Below, one piece after another: positions 16,738 to 25,695 of a stretch of DNA of 64,000 bases. How positions within the stretch are numbered: position 1 is the first letter of the stretch; each line of letters starts with the position of its first letter. Under the pieces are notes generated by a model. The model worked only from the letters and a program-made list of their open reading frames with translations, was not told where the DNA came from and searched no databases. The stretch lies in sequence record OP292654.1; one strand, given 5' to 3'. Made by a program: the position numbers and the translations under genes.

Positions 16738-17148
16738 ATGGCTACATTCACTACTAACTCTTACAACGATGTTCTGGTACTGGCTAAAACCTTTGGCGTG
16801 GACGCCCTGGAATACGCAGTACAGAACAGTACTGTAGACGTTGCTTTCCCTGCCCTGGTCAGAGAGTGTAAACGTTGGGCGACTCGTCAGGTTATCGAGT
16901 TACAGAACGTCAATGATGGCAACGTAGAATACAGTGTTGATGCTGTATTCAAGGCAGAGTATGAGCCAGCTATCAATCAGTATATCACTAACCTGGATGA
17001 TATTACTATCACCCGGACAGGATTTGGTTCGTTCACTAAGAACGCACGTCAGGCAATGAATGACGGCGACATTAACGCCGACACGTTAGCATTCATCGTG
17101 AATGCTATCCGCGAGAAGGGTGAAGCCCGTATCATCCTCAGTCTCTAA
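16738..17148 (+). CDS. Hypothetical protein
   Basis: AGGAG SD. Confidence 0.85.
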   Translation: MATFTTNSYNDVLVLAKTFGVDALEYAVQNSTVDVAFPALVRECKRWATRQVIELQNVNDGNVEYSVDAVFKAEYEPAINQYITNLDDITITRTGFGSFTKNARQAMNDGDINADTLAFIVNAIREKGEARIILSL

Positions 17149-17215
17149 AGTACTTGACAGTACTCAACAGCCCTGCTAATCTAGCGGGGCTTATTCTTTT
17201 ATAGGAGTACTAAAC

Positions 17216-17416
17216 ATGTTCACTGTCATTGGTTGCTTAGGATCTATTGTAGGTCAGGCTAACAGTACTGACGAGGCTATCACTATCGTTCAGCAACAGA
17301 TACCACTAAGCGATAAGAAGCTACGCACGTTAGGCAACGCCCTTCAGCGGCTGGCTGCTGGCTCAGAGTACCACGTGGAATACGGTGGCTCAGGCTGTAC
17401 TGTACGCCGCTCATAG
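17216..17416 (+). CDS. Small hypothetical protein
   Basis: AGGAG SD. Confidence 0.75.
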   Translation: MFTVIGCLGSIVGQANSTDEAITIVQQQIPLSDKKLRTLGNALQRLAAGSEYHVEYGGSGCTVRRS

Positions 17417-17646
17417 AGCGTTATACGCAGGATTTAAGTACTTTAGGAATTATCTGAAAAAAAGTTAAGCCAGATAAAAAATGCTTGACTTTTAAAATGA
17501 ACAGGTAATCCCTTGACTTTTCTGTATATAACGTTAAAAGACTATGCTAAAAAATTTGACTTAGTAAAGGCCAGTAATGCTTAGCGGCCTTATAAACGGG
17601 GTATAAGTATTACCCCTAACAATAATTCCCCAATTAAGGAAAACAT

Positions 17647-18252
17647 ATGGAAAGCACAGCTTGTGGTTTGGCAAACCGTGAATGGAATTCTCGCCTGAAT
17701 CGTATTAAACAAAATGCTCATAACGGTTTATCCCTCGTAAACCTCGGCGAAGATTACTACACGAAGTTCCTCAAAATCTCGGAAGTACTGATACAGTTAC
17801 TTCTACAAATCGAAGATAAACTTCAAAATGGTCGAACCAGCGTCCTCAGCGATCAGGTCGAACACACTCTTTTAGAAATTGGCGGTACTATAGGTCTTAC
17901 TGTGACATATACTGTACAAGCTAATTCTTCCGCAATCACTATTGGTGACTTCTTTGATCCACACGTTCGCATTGGTATGCTTCGTACTGAATATGATTAT
18001 GAAGTACTGGAAGGTTATTCATTTGTCGGCCAGGGAATGATAGTACTCCAGGGTGCTGATACAGGGTACTATTCATCTAATGGCCTCGGTATGTTTGAAA
18101 CGTTAAAAGAAAGCATTGAGTACTTAAAGAATGACAAGTACCGTACTTTCATGATTTACGGGAAGCACATTGACACACCTATTGATTTAGTGTCATACAA
18201 AGGTGTTGTTGAACAGATTATTGAGAAAGCATCGGAGTTAGGATACATCTAA
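17647..18252 (+). CDS. Hypothetical ~200-aa protein, first of the tandem array
   Basis: AAGGA SD; size matches array members. Confidence 0.8.
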   Translation: MESTACGLANREWNSRLNRIKQNAHNGLSLVNLGEDYYTKFLKISEVLIQLLLQIEDKLQNGRTSVLSDQVEHTLLEIGGTIGLTVTYTVQANSSAITIGDFFDPHVRIGMLRTEYDYEVLEGYSFVGQGMIVLQGADTGYYSSNGLGMFETLKESIEYLKNDKYRTFMIYGKHIDTPIDLVSYKGVVEQIIEKASELGYI

Positions 18253-18253
18253 T

Positions 18254-18856
18254 ATGGATTACGAAAAGTACGAAAAACTGAAAGAAATGTTTCTTGGAAC
18301 GTGGGAACACCTTGTACCTAAGATGCCTATTCAAGATAAAGCATTTGTTCAGTTAACTGATGAATACGGTGCTTCAGTAGCACGATGGAGTGATGGTGAT
18401 GAATACCAGTACATCTTAAAGTTATTTGGTAACGGTGGAGGTTGGCAAGAGGACATTGTTTTCAGTATGTCATTTAACACTAGTACTCAATACTTAAGTA
18501 CTTTTGATCTTAACACTGATGGTATGCGTATTGCGTTCTGGAAAGAATCACATCCACGGTACTACGCATTATATGATCCTACTAATGCTAGGAATGGTCA
18601 GCAGCATACTTTCATATCTTTTCCTTTCCCTGAAGAATATTTCTTCCAGCGTATGACAGTACAGGAAACGTTACCTGAAGAAGATTACGCATTGTGGGAT
18701 GAACAGTGTGAGAAGATGATTAATGTACTAACCAGGAATGACCATCCTGCTTATTCTATTGGGATGGTACTGAAAGATTACAGTTTAGATGTACAGACAG
18801 TACTGGATTTACTAGTACCTTACTTAGAAGGAAAACATGATGCTTCAGACAATTAA
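18254..18856 (+). CDS. Paralogue-array protein (EExxFQxLT family)
   Basis: FPFPEEYFFQRMTV. Confidence 0.85.
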   Translation: MDYEKYEKLKEMFLGTWEHLVPKMPIQDKAFVQLTDEYGASVARWSDGDEYQYILKLFGNGGGWQEDIVFSMSFNTSTQYLSTFDLNTDGMRIAFWKESHPRYYALYDPTNARNGQQHTFISFPFPEEYFFQRMTVQETLPEEDYALWDEQCEKMINVLTRNDHPAYSIGMVLKDYSLDVQTVLDLLVPYLEGKHDASDN

Positions 18857-19463
18857 TTTTCAATATACACTGATTACACATTTACGTGAACTGTACTTGA
18901 AGATGTTTCCCAATATTGAGACATTGAAGACAGCGGGATATGGTAGTACTTTTGCTTATCGTACTACTAAGTACTATCCAGCATTTGGTTCTTCAGTAAC
19001 ATGTAACATTGTTGTCAACTATGATAATGCTAATTTAAGTTTTCATGGTGACAGGTTATATAAAAGTAATTCTGAGCAACTAGTTTCTATGACTACTCAT
19101 GAGCAGCGTCCACAATTAATTAGTACTTATGATGGTCATAGTCTTCGTACTGTTCCTAACGCAGAAAACCCATATTACTTCATGAAGGGCAATCATCCCA
19201 CAAAGGTATTTGAGATGCTTCATGAGAATGATCCAGAAGAATTAGAAGTTATGGAGTTCATGCTTATGTCTAAGTATGGTATGGTAGATTTAACTGCTAT
19301 ACTACTGAATCAGGTTCTTATCAATGAAGACGTTGGTATTCAGAAGTATACTATCAACCTACCGCCATTTGTTGGATTAGGTGAAGAACGAGAATCAGCG
19401 TTAAATGATTTGTATTACAGTACTGTATTAGGATTAGAGCATGAAGCCTCCAAAGTTGGATGA
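18837..19463 (+). CDS. Paralogue-array protein (divergent)
   Basis: ~200 aa, overlapping coupling, weak motif EELEVMEFMLM. Confidence 0.8.
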   Translation: MMLQTINFQYTLITHLRELYLKMFPNIETLKTAGYGSTFAYRTTKYYPAFGSSVTCNIVVNYDNANLSFHGDRLYKSNSEQLVSMTTHEQRPQLISTYDGHSLRTVPNAENPYYFMKGNHPTKVFEMLHENDPEELEVMEFMLMSKYGMVDLTAILLNQVLINEDVGIQKYTINLPPFVGLGEERESALNDLYYSTVLGLEHEASKVG

Positions 19464-20079
19464 AGTTGTACGACTAATGAAAGTACTGGATGACCTGTAT
19501 TGTATGTACAGGTTAGATGATGGATTAGGATTTACATTTCAGGTTAAGCAGTTAAGTACTGGTACAAATTATCGTATATCTGTAAATTCAAGCATAGCAT
19601 ACATAGAGATGCTTGATAAACCATTTGAGGGATGTACTGAATTTTTGTATTACGATGCGAATACCGAGCCATTCACGCCTGAAATATGGGATGATGTAAG
19701 AGCGATATTTCCCACACGATACCCATATTGGATGGCAAGTCGTGGAATCCGTCGTGCAAGTTTAGGAAGGTTAGATATGATGGCTCAGACATATCCTGTA
19801 CTACCGGCTGATATAAGTCTTGAACCTGATATAATTGATCCGATAATCTTTCAGAACCTCACACGTTATACAATGAATGAAGTCCTGACTCAGTTAATTG
19901 CTGTACAGATATATCCTCACAGGATGACTGAGTTTGAGAGGGATGAAAAAGGTTTCTTTAGTACGATGAAGTTAGATTATCGAGTACTGGATATTTTGAC
20001 GGAACAAGAGATATTAGAGTTAATAGAAGTTATTGAGACAGAGATACAGGAGCGGAAAGATGGTACAGACAACGTTTAA
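19441..20079 (+). CDS. Paralogue-array protein
   Basis: DPIIFQNLTR. Confidence 0.8.
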   Translation: MKPPKLDEVVRLMKVLDDLYCMYRLDDGLGFTFQVKQLSTGTNYRISVNSSIAYIEMLDKPFEGCTEFLYYDANTEPFTPEIWDDVRAIFPTRYPYWMASRGIRRASLGRLDMMAQTYPVLPADISLEPDIIDPIIFQNLTRYTMNEVLTQLIAVQIYPHRMTEFERDEKGFFSTMKLDYRVLDILTEQEILELIEVIETEIQERKDGTDNV

Positions 20080-20719
20080 GAACCTTTATGTACAAGATGC
20101 GTTTAAAGATGTATTGAAGATGTTGATGACACCATTTGAGACAAAAGTTCTAAATGACATATCATTCAAGAACGAAAATGTTCGTTGTCGTTTAGTACGA
20201 GCACGTGATGACAGGATGACATTCAATGCTTATGCTATTGGTGAAGATACAGATTATGAAATAATTCATTGTACATGTTTTTACGATACAGGCACAGTAG
20301 TATCTAATTTGCGTTCATCTCATTTCCGATTAAATTCGAATTGTGAGAACATAGGATTCAGTACGTACCGAAAGGGTAGTACCGAATTGTTAATAAGTCA
20401 TGCGATTAATATACAAAATATTGAGCATTGTACATTACAATATCCATTACACGAGGAACAAGTGTTTCAGGAGTTAACACGGTTTCCAGTACCTTTAGAA
20501 TCAGATATTGATTTATTCATGAATATTGGTTCATATGTAATGGAAGGTATTACGAAGTTCAAGGCATATTCATTCAACGCAGGATGGATTGCGGAAGATC
20601 AAATAGATGAAACAAACAAAGAAAGTATGGTACAATCAGTACGAGAAGTATTGGACGGATTGATTCAGGTTGAGAAAGACCGTATCGCAAAAGGTGATGA
20701 TTTTCAAGGAGATAAATAA
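20060..20719 (+). CDS. Paralogue-array protein
   Basis: YPLHEEQVFQELTR. Confidence 0.85.
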   Translation: MVQTTFKNLYVQDAFKDVLKMLMTPFETKVLNDISFKNENVRCRLVRARDDRMTFNAYAIGEDTDYEIIHCTCFYDTGTVVSNLRSSHFRLNSNCENIGFSTYRKGSTELLISHAINIQNIEHCTLQYPLHEEQVFQELTRFPVPLESDIDLFMNIGSYVMEGITKFKAYSFNAGWIAEDQIDETNKESMVQSVREVLDGLIQVEKDRIAKGDDFQGDK

Positions 20720-20810
20720 GTCTTCACCTTAAAAAAGCTGTTCAAAAAATAACCTAAAAAAATTTCCGCTTCTCATTATAGATATTAAGATATAATGGGC
20801 GGCGGCGACC

Positions 20811-21416
20811 GTGCGAGGGAAGCGTGTGAGAAATTGTGAGTTATTGAAGCAGTTTTATGAAGAACAGAATGTTTTAATTCAGATTGTGGATAATTTAGTA
20901 CTTGATAGTGTAAAGAAAGGTTCTTTCAGTACAAGTAATATGGGCGGCAAGAGTGGTACATTAGAGTACAGATTAGTTTGTACTTCTCATTGGGTACAAC
21001 TAAAAATCTTTGATACTAATTACGTATTTGAATACAGTATGGATTTCGAGTTCGATAGTTGGGATTGTTGTCAATTCTTTGGTGAACCATTAAGTTCAGG
21101 TATTAACTTCGGTAGAGTACAGGATGATGATAAGATATGGATACAAGACATAGAACGTCTGAAAGTACTTCAGTATCCTGTACCAGAGGAACAGTACTTT
21201 CAGTACTTAACTTTATTTGATATGAGTACTGAGGATTTATATCAGTACTTTGTGAACATTAAGAAAGAACATCAATGCGTATTACAGTTAATGGCAGAAG
21301 ACAGTACTGGTATTGAACAGTTCACTAATTTTCTTAATGATCCTGGTAGTACAAAGAAAGTACGAGATGATATTAGGATGATAGAGTACGCATTTAGACA
21401 GACGGCAAAATTATGA
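20811..21416 (+). CDS. Paralogue-array protein
   Basis: YPVPEEQYFQYLTL; start uncertain. Confidence 0.8.
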   Translation: MRGKRVRNCELLKQFYEEQNVLIQIVDNLVLDSVKKGSFSTSNMGGKSGTLEYRLVCTSHWVQLKIFDTNYVFEYSMDFEFDSWDCCQFFGEPLSSGINFGRVQDDDKIWIQDIERLKVLQYPVPEEQYFQYLTLFDMSTEDLYQYFVNIKKEHQCVLQLMAEDSTGIEQFTNFLNDPGSTKKVRDDIRMIEYAFRQTAKL

Positions 21417-21994
21417 TAGAAGTACTGAAAACATTACATGAGATAGTGAAAGAACTACCTAAGTTAAGAGATAAACCATTTGTTCTTAAAACAAGTGATA
21501 CTAATATCGAGCATGATTATGTGAGTACTGGTTATCAGATACAGCATTCTTTTAGTGTTAAAGAATCTGACAATCCCGCTCACCACCAAAAGCAAATAAA
21601 TTTCACATTAAGTAGAAGTTCTATTTGTCATGTAGCAGCATCAGTACAAACATTATGTTCATTAAGTGTTGTGTATGATGTAGCTTGGTTTTTCAATAAT
21701 ATTTCCAAGATACATCATCAAATTTCTATGAATAACATTCCTGAGAGTAATGCGTACTTTATGAGTACTGGTGGTAATGTAGTTGCTATATTACCAGAAC
21801 AGATTACAGAGGAATGGATGTTCCAGTTATTAACTTTACATGATATACCGTACTTTGAAGATATGACTGAATATGATGCTATTCACAATACTATCAGAGA
21901 ACTTCCATTCAAAATGAGTTTCAATTTCACCTACAATGAACTGTACTGGAGTACGTTCTTAGAACAAATAAAAAGGTACTTAGATGAAGCGTGA
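21413..21994 (+). CDS. Paralogue-array protein
   Basis: ITEEWMFQLLTL. Confidence 0.85.
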   Translation: MIEVLKTLHEIVKELPKLRDKPFVLKTSDTNIEHDYVSTGYQIQHSFSVKESDNPAHHQKQINFTLSRSSICHVAASVQTLCSLSVVYDVAWFFNNISKIHHQISMNNIPESNAYFMSTGGNVVAILPEQITEEWMFQLLTLHDIPYFEDMTEYDAIHNTIRELPFKMSFNFTYNELYWSTFLEQIKRYLDEA

Positions 21995-22580
21995 AGATTT
22001 CAGTACTCCTGAAACGTTTTATATGATTCGTTATGTATATCAGTTGTATCTTCAGATGGAAGAAAAGTATTCTCATTTGAAGGATATTGAAGAAAGTTAT
22101 AATTTTGAATTCATTAACTTCAGAGGTACTGGTCAGAATGTTGTAATGCGACCCAATTACTTCGCTGTATATGATGAAACGGACACAGAATATCCAGTAT
22201 TTCATATAGAAAGTATTTCACGAGAACACGCAGTTTGGGCTGAATTTTCCTTGTCAGACAGTGAGTTTCAGTGGTACAATGCTAGATACAATGATAGTTT
22301 ATGTATTGTTGTCGGAGATCACCCTAAGAATTGGCAGAAGCGTTACATTGGACTGAATAGTAGTTCTAATGCGAATGAAGTCTTTGATGAATATGGTGAA
22401 GAATATTTCTTCCAACAACTAACAGTACAGAACATTATTCCATACGAATTATTCCAGCAAGAAGTTAACTGGTACTATAATCTAGTTCTTCCTAATTTAT
22501 TACGTGAAGATCTTATGATTAATATTCCCAATATGGAATTATTCAATTTAAAAACACTTGAAGGGTTCAGGGTAATATGA
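21984..22580 (+). CDS. Paralogue-array protein
   Basis: YGEEYFFQQLTV. Confidence 0.85.
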   Translation: MKREDFSTPETFYMIRYVYQLYLQMEEKYSHLKDIEESYNFEFINFRGTGQNVVMRPNYFAVYDETDTEYPVFHIESISREHAVWAEFSLSDSEFQWYNARYNDSLCIVVGDHPKNWQKRYIGLNSSSNANEVFDEYGEEYFFQQLTVQNIIPYELFQQEVNWYYNLVLPNLLREDLMINIPNMELFNLKTLEGFRVI

Positions 22581-23011
22581 TTGTATTTCATGCTAGTACT
22601 GTGAAGATTGAGGAATTCTATATTCCTTATGGTGGTTTACATGTAGGTGGATACCAGAGTGCTATTGAATGTGCTTTACGTAAGTTATATGAAGGCCGTG
22701 GTAAAGGACATAGCATTGACCACATACACATTCATCAGTGCGAACTTATCAGTACTAACCCTTATGAATCTTTTGATGAAGGTTCAGATGATGGATGGCG
22801 TAAATTACATAATGTACTTCTACGTGATAATGTCATTTTCGATTCTATTAAATATATCAACGAATATGAACCGGACATTATGCCATCCTTCTGCCTTTTT
22901 GATACAACAAATATTAAAATTTTAGACCATAGCACAATGCATATGGACGTAGCAGAAGATATACTAAATGGACAATTTACATTCGAAGGCTATAAAGGAA
23001 GCTATTACTAG
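22577..23011 (+). CDS. Possible ADP-ribosyltransferase-fold protein
   Basis: N-terminal VFHAS, GGLHVG, and DSIKYINEYE...SFCLFD pattern resembling phage ART-like domains. Confidence 0.45.
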   Translation: MIVFHASTVKIEEFYIPYGGLHVGGYQSAIECALRKLYEGRGKGHSIDHIHIHQCELISTNPYESFDEGSDDGWRKLHNVLLRDNVIFDSIKYINEYEPDIMPSFCLFDTTNIKILDHSTMHMDVAEDILNGQFTFEGYKGSYY

Positions 23012-23666
23012 CGATGATGACTTTATGGCAGAACTACAAGCAGAATTCGCTGCTCAGATAACCACAGAAATTGATCTTGAATTAACAAAACGAATAATTC
23101 AATTTTGTTATGAGGATTATGAGGATGTGTTTCTTAAAGAATTATATCTAGTTCGACAAATGTTACCACTACTGGAAATTATAGAGAACTATTGTATTTC
23201 TAATCCAGACTTTACTGACATTTATTCTGATTGTGGTCAATTTCGTATTCAGCATGTGAAGGATAATTGTGTACATGTCTATATGAAATTTACATCTAAC
23301 AATCATTCTTCATGGCATGATGCTGCGTTAATTCACTTCAGTGATATTAATGATGGGAATGTTGTTACTCAGGACAAGTTTTCGTATTCTCCATTGAATA
23401 AAGGTATGAAAGTACTTGACTGTACTGATTACCGATTGGATGATAATTTGGAACATGATGAAGCATGGTACTTCCAAAAATTGACTCAGGTAGATTTGCC
23501 GCCAGAAGAATATTTTATTGGAGTTCAACGGACTTTAGAAAATCTTTGGGCTGGTAATTTTGTGTCATTGACGATCAATATGGACAGGATTTTTAATGAC
23601 AGTCATATTGAATCATATAGAAAATTAGTACATAAATTGGAAGAAGATAATGCTGAATATAATTGA
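22968..23666 (+). CDS. Paralogue-array protein
   Basis: HDEAWYFQKLTQ. Confidence 0.85.
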   Translation: MDNLHSKAIKEAITSDDDFMAELQAEFAAQITTEIDLELTKRIIQFCYEDYEDVFLKELYLVRQMLPLLEIIENYCISNPDFTDIYSDCGQFRIQHVKDNCVHVYMKFTSNNHSSWHDAALIHFSDINDGNVVTQDKFSYSPLNKGMKVLDCTDYRLDDNLEHDEAWYFQKLTQVDLPPEEYFIGVQRTLENLWAGNFVSLTINMDRIFNDSHIESYRKLVHKLEEDNAEYN

Positions 23667-24093
23667 AAACATCGATCCTATCAATTTTATTATCCAGGAT
23701 GTTTTAAGTAACATTAATGGATTAGAACTTGCTCCTAAGAATAACTTTTACATAGGCGAAGGATATTCCTTGGATGTTCAGGAAGTACGTAAGAATGTTT
23801 ACAAGTTAAAAGTACGAACACAGAACTTACAAGATTTATGTAACATTGGTATTGACAAGAAGAATCTTGTAATACGTTACAGTCCTGAATTTTTCTTCGT
23901 TCAGGCGGGAACAGAATTGAGTACTAATCTCTTTGAAGGTTCCTTTAGTTTAGAAGAACTCCCTACTGCTTTTGAAAATAATGGTCAGGTTTTTGGCTTG
24001 CCAGTTCAATTTGATTATGATACCATGCAGGAAACGATTACGATGTGCCGTAGAGTCCATGAGGAATTCTTGCGGAAATTAACCACGTCATAA
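23650..24093 (+). CDS. Hypothetical protein
   Basis: Coupled ORF. Confidence 0.75.
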   Translation: MLNIIENIDPINFIIQDVLSNINGLELAPKNNFYIGEGYSLDVQEVRKNVYKLKVRTQNLQDLCNIGIDKKNLVIRYSPEFFFVQAGTELSTNLFEGSFSLEELPTAFENNGQVFGLPVQFDYDTMQETITMCRRVHEEFLRKLTTS

Positions 24094-24173
24094 CAAAACC
24101 GTACTCAAGGATGGGTATAAATACTTTTAGAGCACCAGATCGGTGTATTAAAAGAGTTCAAGGGAGTGAACGC

Positions 24174-24650
24174 ATGAATATTATTCACAAAGAGAACGGG
24201 CCGATTGATGATGTGATCTCAAAAGAAGCCTTTGAAGTACATGGGATTATGTTTAACATCAAGGACATTGTACAATGCCTTTTTCTATGTAGTTCGACAA
24301 TGTACGAATTTTTCAATAATCCAATGTGTAATTGCTTTGCTGTTACGATTAACAGTACTGATAAATGGATTATGGCAACACCCATGACAATGAATACAGA
24401 ATTCAATGAATGTGTGATGCGGAACAATAAAGATAAGACTCCACAATCTGAAGTGGAGAAACTAAGAAACACATATACAAAACCTGATGATAAACATATT
24501 TTGATGTTCTTATCTAAAGGCTATGTCATGGATAATTTTACAGTACGTGAAAGTTATCACGATTTCCTCTTTACAGAGGGTGAGCCACATGTTATGATTA
24601 CCGCTGAAGACATAGAAAGTTTAACACTAAAGAACCCATACGTGGAGTAA
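24174..24650 (+). CDS. Hypothetical protein
   Basis: GGGAG SD before ATG 24174. Confidence 0.75.
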   Translation: MNIIHKENGPIDDVISKEAFEVHGIMFNIKDIVQCLFLCSSTMYEFFNNPMCNCFAVTINSTDKWIMATPMTMNTEFNECVMRNNKDKTPQSEVEKLRNTYTKPDDKHILMFLSKGYVMDNFTVRESYHDFLFTEGEPHVMITAEDIESLTLKNPYVE

Positions 24651-24653
24651 GAA

Positions 24654-24833
24654 ATGGCTAAGTCCAAGAAGAAAAGTACTCAAGAAGTACCTGACGTTCA
24701 GAACTTCGTTGCGAAGCATATGAACACTTTCAACAAAGCAGCAACGCATGTTGATCGTAAAAAAGATTCGAAGAATGGAAAGATTAAACACAAAGGACGC
24801 TATGATGCGTCCTTTGACGTTTCTAAGGGTTAA
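24654..24833 (+). CDS. Small basic protein missing from the ORF track (MAKSKKK...NFVAKHMNTFNKAATHVDRKK...KHKG)
   Basis: GGAG SD; N.VAK....FNKA..H.DRKK..KHK pattern recalled from small basic phage proteins. Confidence 0.7.
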   Translation: MAKSKKKSTQEVPDVQNFVAKHMNTFNKAATHVDRKKDSKNGKIKHKGRYDASFDVSKG

Positions 24834-25695
24834 TACTTTGTTGGACTTTAAAGCACATTCACTTAAGGAACATCTGGATCATATATTCAATGGTCCAATT
24901 GATTCCCCACTTATGTTAGGTCATGATTCACCAAGAACGAACCGTGGCAACACTGGATTCACACAAGATATAAAAACTCATGAAGGTACATTTATTAAAG
25001 CTAGAAGTGTTGTACATCCAACGTTACGAGAATTTAATATCCTCGGAAATCGTATGCACTATCATCTGAGTACTTTTAAGGAGATAATCAGTTTTAAAAA
25101 TGTTTATTCTAAGATTAAAATAAACAAGAAAGGTGAAACTAGGGTTCATTCTAAATCGTACCATTTCGGTGAAAGAAATATTGAAGTTAACTATGAGGAC
25201 AGAACTTATAAATCTATTTGTTTTGGTTCTCATACTTATACTCGTCGTATACTAAAAAATGGAATAACTAATTATTCTATTACATTTCCGTATACTGGTT
25301 GTGAATTGTATGAAACTTATAATAGTAAAGGAGTATGTACAGAAAGTCTCTTTCATTTTCCTTATGAATCAGGAAATGGTTCAATTCAACTTCATCTAAT
25401 TAATGGTTCAGTTGAGTTCTTCTGTAAAGGTGATTCAAAAACTGATTATATGTTAAAGAATATTAAATTACCAGAACTGAAAGATGCGAGTATTGTTAAT
25501 CTGTACAATGAATATAACTGTTTCTTTATTGATTTAATGATTCCAGATTCTGGATTATATGAAGCATATCAATATGGTTTAGAACAGTTGCGTACTTTAG
25601 TACAGGAAAGGTCTGAAACTGCTCCTTACGATAAGGATGTATTTCGGAATATGTTAGCACAAATTAGCGAGAACACAATAAAATATGAAACGTAA
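24748..25695 (+). CDS. Hypothetical protein (true start probably downstream of 24800)
   Basis: Long ORF. Confidence 0.75.
   Translation: MLIVKKIRRMERLNTKDAMMRPLTFLRVNTLLDFKAHSLKEHLDHIFNGPIDSPLMLGHDSPRTNRGNTGFTQDIKTHEGTFIKARSVVHPTLREFNILGNRMHYHLSTFKEIISFKNVYSKIKINKKGETRVHSKSYHFGERNIEVNYEDRTYKSICFGSHTYTRRILKNGITNYSITFPYTGCELYETYNSKGVCTESLFHFPYESGNGSIQLHLINGSVEFFCKGDSKTDYMLKNIKLPELKDASIVNLYNEYNCFFIDLMIPDSGLYEAYQYGLEQLRTLVQERSETAPYDKDVFRNMLAQISENTIKYET

Follow-up and report, generated by a model that had tools for sequence, protein, structure and literature searches.

Eight diverged paralogues with a conserved FQ helix form a tandem array beside the terminal repeat of Xanthomonas jumbo phage XbC2

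What is encoded by the 11 closely packed genes, all annotated as hypothetical (XbC2_35–45, here g01–g11), at positions 17,647–24,093 of OP292654.1, the record of Xanthomonas phage XbC2? XbC2 is a Rak2-like jumbo myovirus with a genome of 367,901 bp, classed as Mimasvirus; the window that we analysed is positions 1–64,000 of this record. A preliminary description, made from the letters alone, had proposed a tandem array of about eight to ten highly diverged paralogues of about 200 amino acids (aa) that share a short motif containing the residues FQ. The array is real, and eight of its genes are true paralogues: XbC2_36–42 and XbC2_44 (g02–g08 and g10). This assignment is based on profile comparison, iterated hidden Markov model (HMM) searches and two AlphaFold models; it includes g03, which had not been listed, and leaves out g01, g09 and g11. 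The eight are old tandem duplicates of one gene for a soluble, acidic, single-domain protein of ~200 aa. We give a probability of about one half to the reading that they now serve as a set of binders, each directed at a host factor or a defence protein. The genes are as follows.

17647..18252, + strand: g01 (XbC2_35), 201 aa, acidic; member-like in size and position, without the motif.
18254..18856, + strand: g02 (XbC2_36), 200 aa member with PEEYFFQRMT; family HMM E 5e-49; phrog_23172.
18840..19463, + strand: g03 (XbC2_37), 207 aa divergent member with the decayed motif LEVMEFMLMSKY.
19441..20079, + strand: g04 (XbC2_38), 212 aa divergent member with DPIIFQNLT.
20060..20719, + strand: g05 (XbC2_39), 219 aa member with HEEQVFQELT; family HMM E 1e-49; phrog_27532.
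20826..21416, + strand: g06 (XbC2_40), 196 aa member with PEEQYFQYLT; GTG start as annotated.
21413..21994, + strand: g07 (XbC2_41), 193 aa member with TEEWMFQLLT; family HMM E 2e-36; phrog_23379.
21984..22580, + strand: g08 (XbC2_42), 198 aa member with GEEYFFQQLT; family HMM E 3e-32.
22577..23011, + strand: g09 (XbC2_43), 144 aa, slowly evolving, unrelated non-member embedded in the array; phrog_11632.
23025..23666, + strand: g10 (XbC2_44), 213 aa member with DEAWYFQKLT (232 aa if begun at the upstream ATG at 22,968); family HMM E 3e-34.
23650..24093, + strand: g11 (XbC2_45), 147 aa, conserved, unrelated non-member that closes the block; phrog_15293.

The paralogues are 11–17% identical to each other, and pairwise BLASTP among them gave weak, motif-centred matches, the best being g05–g06 (E 3e-6). 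Syntenic arrays were therefore compared at the level of profiles: loci were collected from nine IMG/VR genomes with the conserved neighbour g11 as bait, orthogroups were built, and these were aligned all against all with hhalign, as had been proposed earlier. Six orthogroups are connected at 80–97.5% (g05–g06, 97.5% over 137 columns; g02–g08, 95.6% over 113 columns; g05–g10, 94%; g02–g06, 93%; g06–g10, 92%; g07–g10, 82%; g08–g10, 80%), and ~0 was obtained for five control orthogroups, taken from unrelated neighbouring genes. The g03 and g04 groups match each other at 96.8% and form a divergent subgroup, related to the main group at 63% and 42% respectively. Several orthogroup pairs gave alignments spanning 100–137 columns, so that the homology extends beyond the motif and is not a matter of chance motif matches. 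An HMM iterated over the open reading frames (ORFs) of all loci converged at 79 proteins, with six array members at E 3e-32 to 1e-49. Two extra array genes found in relatives, OG41 and OG45, scored 71% and 44% against the family profile, and we treat their membership as provisional.

The remaining three genes behave differently. For g09, hhalign gave ~0 against all family groups, and for g11 at most 1%; both may nevertheless be functional partners of the family. The first gene, g01, is confined to XbC2-like genomes, different genes occupying its position in other phages; it had no PHROG or Pfam match, and its hhalign probability was at most 2% with any family orthogroup and 1.6% with the family profile. 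It may or may not be a distant member, a link having been sought by profile and none detected.

Since BLASTP is nearly blind to these relationships, BLAST-based paralogue lists miss the family. The BLASTP-based list for phage CBB (CBB Table S1) does not include CBB_53–58, and the RaK2 paper states that ‘nearly 10% of gene products are paralogues’ and names no family. Both papers, like the present work, recognise many internal duplications in Rak2-like phages; the family itself is not described in them, nor is it mentioned in a comparative jumbo-phage review or in recent papers on Asteriusvirus.

The motif FQx[LM]T occurs in seven of the 11 proteins (g02, g04, g05, g06, g07, g08 and g10) and always lies at 0.62–0.72 of the protein length, in agreement with the earlier remark that it recurs at a similar position. 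In 20,000 composition-preserving shuffles of the 11 proteins the number of carriers never exceeded two, and a six-frame translation of the window contained only three further occurrences. Orthologues in Kaldavass, CBB, GAP32 and fHe-Yen9-04 have kept it. It is absent from g01, g09 and g11; in g03 it has decayed to EFMLMS, and in a joint g03/g04 alignment orthologues read FQLLT (GAP32) and FQMLT (Yen9-04). Among 76 distinct sequences, conservation reaches 100% for F, 98% for Q, 96% for T and 88% for the first E. The core signature is [YF]P-x-x-E-[EA]-x-[YF]-F-Q-x-[LM]-T, and its extended form is [LI]-x-Y-P-x-x-E-[EA]-x-[YF]-F-Q-x-[LM]-T-x-x-[DN]-[LIV]-P-x-E-E.

The variable positions of the motif (−5, −2, +2 and +5/+6) fall on one helical stripe and the remainder is conserved, which suggests a helix that exposes one stripe and is otherwise packed. 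Because the variable positions follow helical periodicity, we favour the view that this putative helix is a structural keystone of the domain, and disfavour a docking epitope shared by all members. The E-x-x-[YF]-F-Q of the motif resembles the site of tobacco etch virus (TEV) protease, ENLYFQ/S. Unlike that site, the motif is helical in both of the models described below, and the position after Q varies instead of being held at G or S; we take the resemblance as coincidence on these grounds, no screen for 3C- or NIa-like proteases having been made.

Two members were modelled with AlphaFold2, g06 from a 50-sequence family alignment and g04 from a separate 14-sequence alignment, and the view that the fold is shared rests on this pair. 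The g06 model (predicted local distance difference test, pLDDT, 95.7; predicted template modelling score, pTM, 0.91) is one compact alpha+beta domain, in which a helix hairpin (residues 2–31) is followed by eight antiparallel strands (37–116), the motif helix (121–128, EEQYFQYL), another helix (136–143), a strand (150–157) and two C-terminal helices (160–193). The g04 model (pLDDT 76.9, pTM 0.78) has the same order of secondary structure, and the motif is helical in both. The motif, which had been called C-terminal, is thus a short mid-domain helix in the g06 model. The idea of a constant module joined to unrelated variable N-terminal domains has also to be given up: a single domain (pTM 0.91) is predicted, whose N-terminal part forms the beta-sheet, and the profile alignments of 100–137 columns contradict such an architecture as well.

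Both models retrieve a common set of BFVD entries with probability 1.00 (K4F9F5, A0A2C9CX39, H6X4N8 and others), nearly all of them from Rak2-like phages. K4F9F5 is the GAP32 orthologue of g06, a RaK2 protein is also among the shared matches, and a 207-aa Yen9-04 entry matched by both models equals the g03 orthologue in length, the identification being by length only. Against solved structures, Foldseek reached a best E of 0.05, and in three VIA searches against the PDB Z reached 4.8, 4.1 and 3.5 at best, where Z 7–8 is typical noise for VIA-align; the sequence profile matched no PDB sequence, and no ESM Atlas entry reached the lead threshold of 0.9 cosine. The predicted fold therefore appears to have no detectable solved counterpart, which we do not claim as proof that it is new.

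Several candidate folds were considered and rejected. The family resembles p32/gC1qBP/MAM33 in having an N-terminal helix, an antiparallel sheet, C-terminal helices and strong acidity, but differs in that the structural scores are noise-level (Foldseek E 0.17–0.26, template modelling score, TM, 0.17–0.19; VIA Z 3.3 for 3jv1 and 2.7 for 6szw) and sequence similarity is absent. Ferredoxin-dependent bilin reductase (PebS, PF05996) had no Pfam match and likewise scored at noise level (Foldseek probability 0.12–0.21, TM 0.2–0.25; VIA Z 2.9; Atlas cosine 0.87, below 0.9). Polo-box, Arp2/3 p34 and MHC-like folds and TipC2 were rejected on score.

How far does the family extend beyond the array? Outside the window, XbC2 carries at least six to eight shorter copies of 111–177 aa, at OP292654.1 269027–322288. 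XbC2_367, 387, 394, 467, 486 and 511 were first found with a full-length profile that contained no XbC2 short copy; XbC2_392 was added by the family HMM, and 485 and 512 are weaker further members. These copies have clear motifs (for example ISEEWHFQLST and ADEAWHFQKMT) and end ~30 residues past them. The region of 269–322 kb also holds many tRNA genes and short hypothetical ORFs. It resembles in content CBB_390–546, predicted by the CBB authors to be early; the CBB paper treats the terminal repeat, too, as an early region.

A profile of the motif region was built on XbC2's own 13 copies, so that 13 of the 15 XbC2 matches at E <= 0.05 are found by construction; 14 remain at E <= 1e-3. At these two thresholds it found 18 and 16 matches in GAP32, 27 and 10 in RaK2, and 29 and 10 in 121Q, and none at either in the distant jumbo phage PA5oct. 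When 1.84 billion representative proteins were searched with a profile, only 68 clusters matched, all of 65–234 aa and with no fusion proteins among them, and those that were traced lie on metagenomic jumbo-phage-like contigs. One metagenomic contig of 9.5 kb has 15 consecutive genes of 174–221 aa, and the HMM recognised at least 10 of these; genes resembling g09 and g11 come next. The contig's copy number is above that of any isolate examined. With g02 as tblastn query, just 17 phage records yielded orthologues, and these belong to Mimasvirus and Eneladusvirus; a word-index protein search gave 11 matches, close orthologues only. As far as these sequence searches reach, the family occurs only in the Rak2-like jumbo phages Mimasvirus, Eneladusvirus, Alcyoneusvirus and Asteriusvirus, and it may be considerably larger in the last of these. 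In 121Q, positions 164000–188000 contain a syntenic array (genes 392–405) after ~40 small genes, many of which match the family weakly.

Existing classifications divide the family over about a dozen unannotated PHROGs, in which motif, fold and copy number are not recorded. Array members matched groups 23172, 26432, 27532, 24375 and 23379, and the best matches of the short dispersed members were 28490, 27549, 30746 and 25164, all of unknown function; the match is strong for most members, and g03, g08 and XbC2_511 had no PHROG match. Cross-matches between 27532 and 24375, and the sharing of 27549 by three short members, hint at kinship. In Pfam and NCBIfam, which are general libraries, nothing significant was found for g01–g10, no dedicated anti-defence library having been searched, and g11 had one chance-level Pfam match below the cutoff.

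We then considered where the array lies. XbC2 has a direct terminal repeat (DTR) of 17,581 bp, non-permuted and T5-type, as determined by PhageTerm (PMC11273794). The feature between the repeat and the array is the following.

17582..17646, + strand: DTR–array junction, from the end of the 17,581-bp repeat to the first array gene; the drop in G+C content (GC) begins here.

In the composition profile, GC steps from 0.43–0.46 through 0.39 to 0.33 at ~17.5 kb, as had been seen in the preliminary description. Because this drop coincides with the published end of the DTR at 17,581, the step is the border between repeat and unique DNA. The array therefore begins 66 bp beyond the repeat, and is the first block of unique DNA after it. 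The arrangement in CBB is closely similar: the repeat measures 22,456 bp and the array opens at 22,520, 64 bp past it. The last position of the Kaldavass record falls exactly at the start of the array. Just before the end of the DTR, three TTGACT boxes lie inside 80 nucleotides (nt) at 17485–17561, none with a good −10 box at sigma-70 spacing; they may be a promoter, packaging or boundary signal.

By megablast, the segment 17,000–25,000 of the window is 100% identical to XbC2 17,000–25,000, followed by Erwinia phage Kaldavass at 88% and then CBB, GAP32 and fHe-Yen9-03/04. The array is syntenic in GAP32, CBB, BF and fHe-Yen9-04, in keeping with the earlier remark that similar arrays exist in enterobacterial jumbo myoviruses. 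Between XbC2 and GAP32, CBB, BF or Yen9-04 the members are 23–50% identical, compared with 56–66% for g09, 73–82% for g11 and 89–93% for the next gene, g12. Ratios of non-synonymous to synonymous substitution (dN/dS) against three close relatives were 0.07–0.36 for members and 0.03–0.18 for g09, g11 and g12. The members are thus real genes under purifying selection, with a constraint two- to three-fold weaker than that on their neighbours, from which they also differ in diverging about twice as fast.

Copy number varies, as a comparison across relatives shows: the array holds six to nine members in isolates and at least 10 in the metagenomic contig, with gain or loss of g03, g07, g08, g10 and the extra groups OG41 and OG45 between genomes. 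Judged from sequence, the array is an old birth-and-death family and not a recent amplification, because the paralogues are so diverged and can each be paired with a separate orthologue in two genera; the recent ‘accordion’ that had been proposed does not agree with either observation.

What might such a family do? The members have isoelectric points of 4.5–5.4 and net charges of −9 to −21, and lack transmembrane or hydrophobic segments and signal peptides. Downstream of the array, the window encodes a Dam-type methylase (~6 kb away) and a cytidylyltransferase; syntenic regions encode RNA ligase 1 (CBB, GAP32, Kaldavass and Yen9-04), polynucleotide kinase (GAP32 and Yen9-04) and an HD protein (CBB). 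Methylase, RNA ligase and polynucleotide kinase are functions known from T4-type counter-defence, and we counted them in favour of a host-directed role. These neighbours and the position beside the terminal repeat point most readily to a putative early role, in taking over the host or in countering its defences.

In such a scheme, genes that start 66 bp into unique DNA in a dense same-strand block would probably give intracellular, non-virion products, probably expressed early, during host takeover or counter-defence. The FQ helix would hold the fold constant, and the remaining sequence, and with it probably the surface, would be free to diverge. Each paralogue would probably bind a different host factor or defence protein and neutralise or redirect it, so that diversified binders on one stable scaffold would be kept up by gene birth and death.

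The most serious rival, which we regard as unlikely, is that the paralogues are subunits of one hetero-oligomeric assembly (a ring or scaffold in the infected cell), gene order and coupling then serving stoichiometric co-production. Adjacent genes overlap by 4–23 nt or are separated by 1 nt, the exceptions being a short gap ahead of g10 and the 106-nt interval that separates g05 from g06; of the translational coupling claimed earlier, the tight packing holds, and the coupling itself is presumed from it. Along with these overlaps, an assembly would account for the same gene order in two genera, for the retention of every orthogroup under purifying selection, and for the fixed array positions of the slow, unrelated g09 and g11. 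The gain and loss of g03, g07, g08, g10, OG41 and OG45 between genomes is, however, awkward for an obligate complex, and the short copies dispersed elsewhere in the genome and the rapid divergence of the members also argue against it.

That the members are enzymes, with the Q, E and T of the motif as an active site acting on nucleic acid of the host or phage or on a small molecule, seems to us improbable. It would explain why four polar or acidic positions are near-invariant in the 76 distinct sequences, and nucleic-acid enzymes are indeed nearby, both in the window (methylase and cytidylyltransferase) and in relatives (RNA ligase). Outside one short helix, however, no His, Cys, Ser, Lys or Arg is conserved; neither sequence nor fold matches an enzyme family, the hints of PebS being noise-level; and a genome would seldom have use for one enzyme in 14 or more copies.

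We find it more doubtful again that the members are internal virion proteins, packaged and ejected to act at entry. Their position at the genome end recalls that of some genes for ejected proteins, and XbC2_366, which adjoins the short member XbC2_367, carries a structural-protein annotation. Mass spectrometry of CBB virions, however, flagged CBB_29 and CBB_38 and none of CBB_53–60, and the lack of signal peptides and hydrophobic segments also speaks against this role.

Very little credence can be given to the suggestion of the preliminary description that the members are adaptors bringing substrates to the phage ClpP: Rak2-like phages do encode ClpP (CBB_104), and adaptors could be expected to combine a conserved motif with variable bodies, as these proteins do, but the array is not linked to the clpP gene, CBB ClpP is listed as virion-associated, which points to head maturation, the motif with its variable positions on one helical face has the look of a packed element and not of a docking peptide, and known Clp adaptors are not resembled in Pfam or fold searches. 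It is just as implausible that the array consists mostly of decaying, functionless duplicates with the motif as their slowest-decaying remnant, as the extreme divergence of the paralogues (11–17% identity), the decayed motif of g03 and the loss of members in some genomes might suggest, since every reading frame is intact, dN/dS is 0.07–0.36, orthologues are maintained across two genera and the models are confident and well packed.

The reading of the paralogues as host-directed binders also has to accommodate observations that do not favour it. No gene as a whole shows positive selection, every dN/dS value being under 1. Most orthogroups stand in the same order across two genera, and stable, non-redundant functions would explain this conserved order no less well than an arms race would. 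Many phage proteins are small and acidic, and these two properties do not help to choose between the readings. The keystone role proposed for the motif helix draws on helical periodicity and a predicted model. Sigma-70-type promoters upstream of the array occur at chance frequency (34 found against 34.6 expected). A search of sequencing runs gave only metagenomes, the few libraries labelled RNA-Seq being from wastewater and not from infections, and the literature that we found on Rak2-like phages contains no paper addressing these genes.

Large families of diverged paralogues situated by terminal repeats, with roles in host range or immune evasion, are found in African swine fever virus (ASFV; MGF360 and MGF505) and in poxviruses (the ankyrin and Bcl-2-like families). 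The phage family is like these in comprising many diverged paralogues on one scaffold, near a terminal repeat and variable in copy number. It is unlike them in fold and host, and in that a role in host interaction has been demonstrated for the viral families and is putative here. Tentatively, and with the odds against so specific a version, the family may be a phage counterpart of terminal multigene families, in which a fold not described before, held together by an invariant FQ helix and duplicated into ~14 to nearly 30 genes per genome (2–5% of genes), would have diversified into inhibitors of host defence or takeover targets, each directed at a different host protein.

In Rak2-like jumbo phages more than 70% of genes lack an assigned function (~75% in XbC2, 83% in phAPEC6). 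What is new here is that about a dozen groups of ‘unknown function’ are joined in one family, with a confident model and a signature by which members can be found. If the members are host-directed binders, they would offer new inhibitors of bacterial proteins or defence systems in a compact set that is amenable to experiment, and would be a clear case of the multigene-family strategy in a phage; if they are housekeeping subunits, their interest would be mainly structural, the fold not yet being among solved structures. Several such phages, XbC2 included, are considered for biocontrol or therapy, which gives practical value to knowing their largest gene family.

The interval between g05 and g06 contains one further conserved feature.

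20720..20825, + strand: conserved 106-nt intergenic element between g05 and g06.

Its core, AAAAAAATTTCCGCTTCTCATTATAG...GATAAAATGG, is near-identical in nine loci from two genera, and the element occurs once in the window. The 5' start is ATAAATAAG, the late-type motif described for CBB, and the 3' end has a TATAAT-like box. RNA folding gave no significant fold for it, and Rfam and RNA folding found no RNA element in the array region or the 106-nt gap. We regard it as a candidate internal promoter, which would divide the array into two blocks.

Two minor observations concern the distribution of the family and its surroundings. The family member EBS4516655.1 lies on a 371,314-bp contig in an assembly of Salmonella enterica Braenderup; this contig probably represents a Rak2-like phage that accompanied the isolate or contaminated it. 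Next to the array, XbC2_46 (g12; 24174–24650, 158 aa, phrog_16362), with 89–93% identity across genera and dN/dS of 0.03–0.06, is by far the most constrained gene of a fast-evolving neighbourhood.

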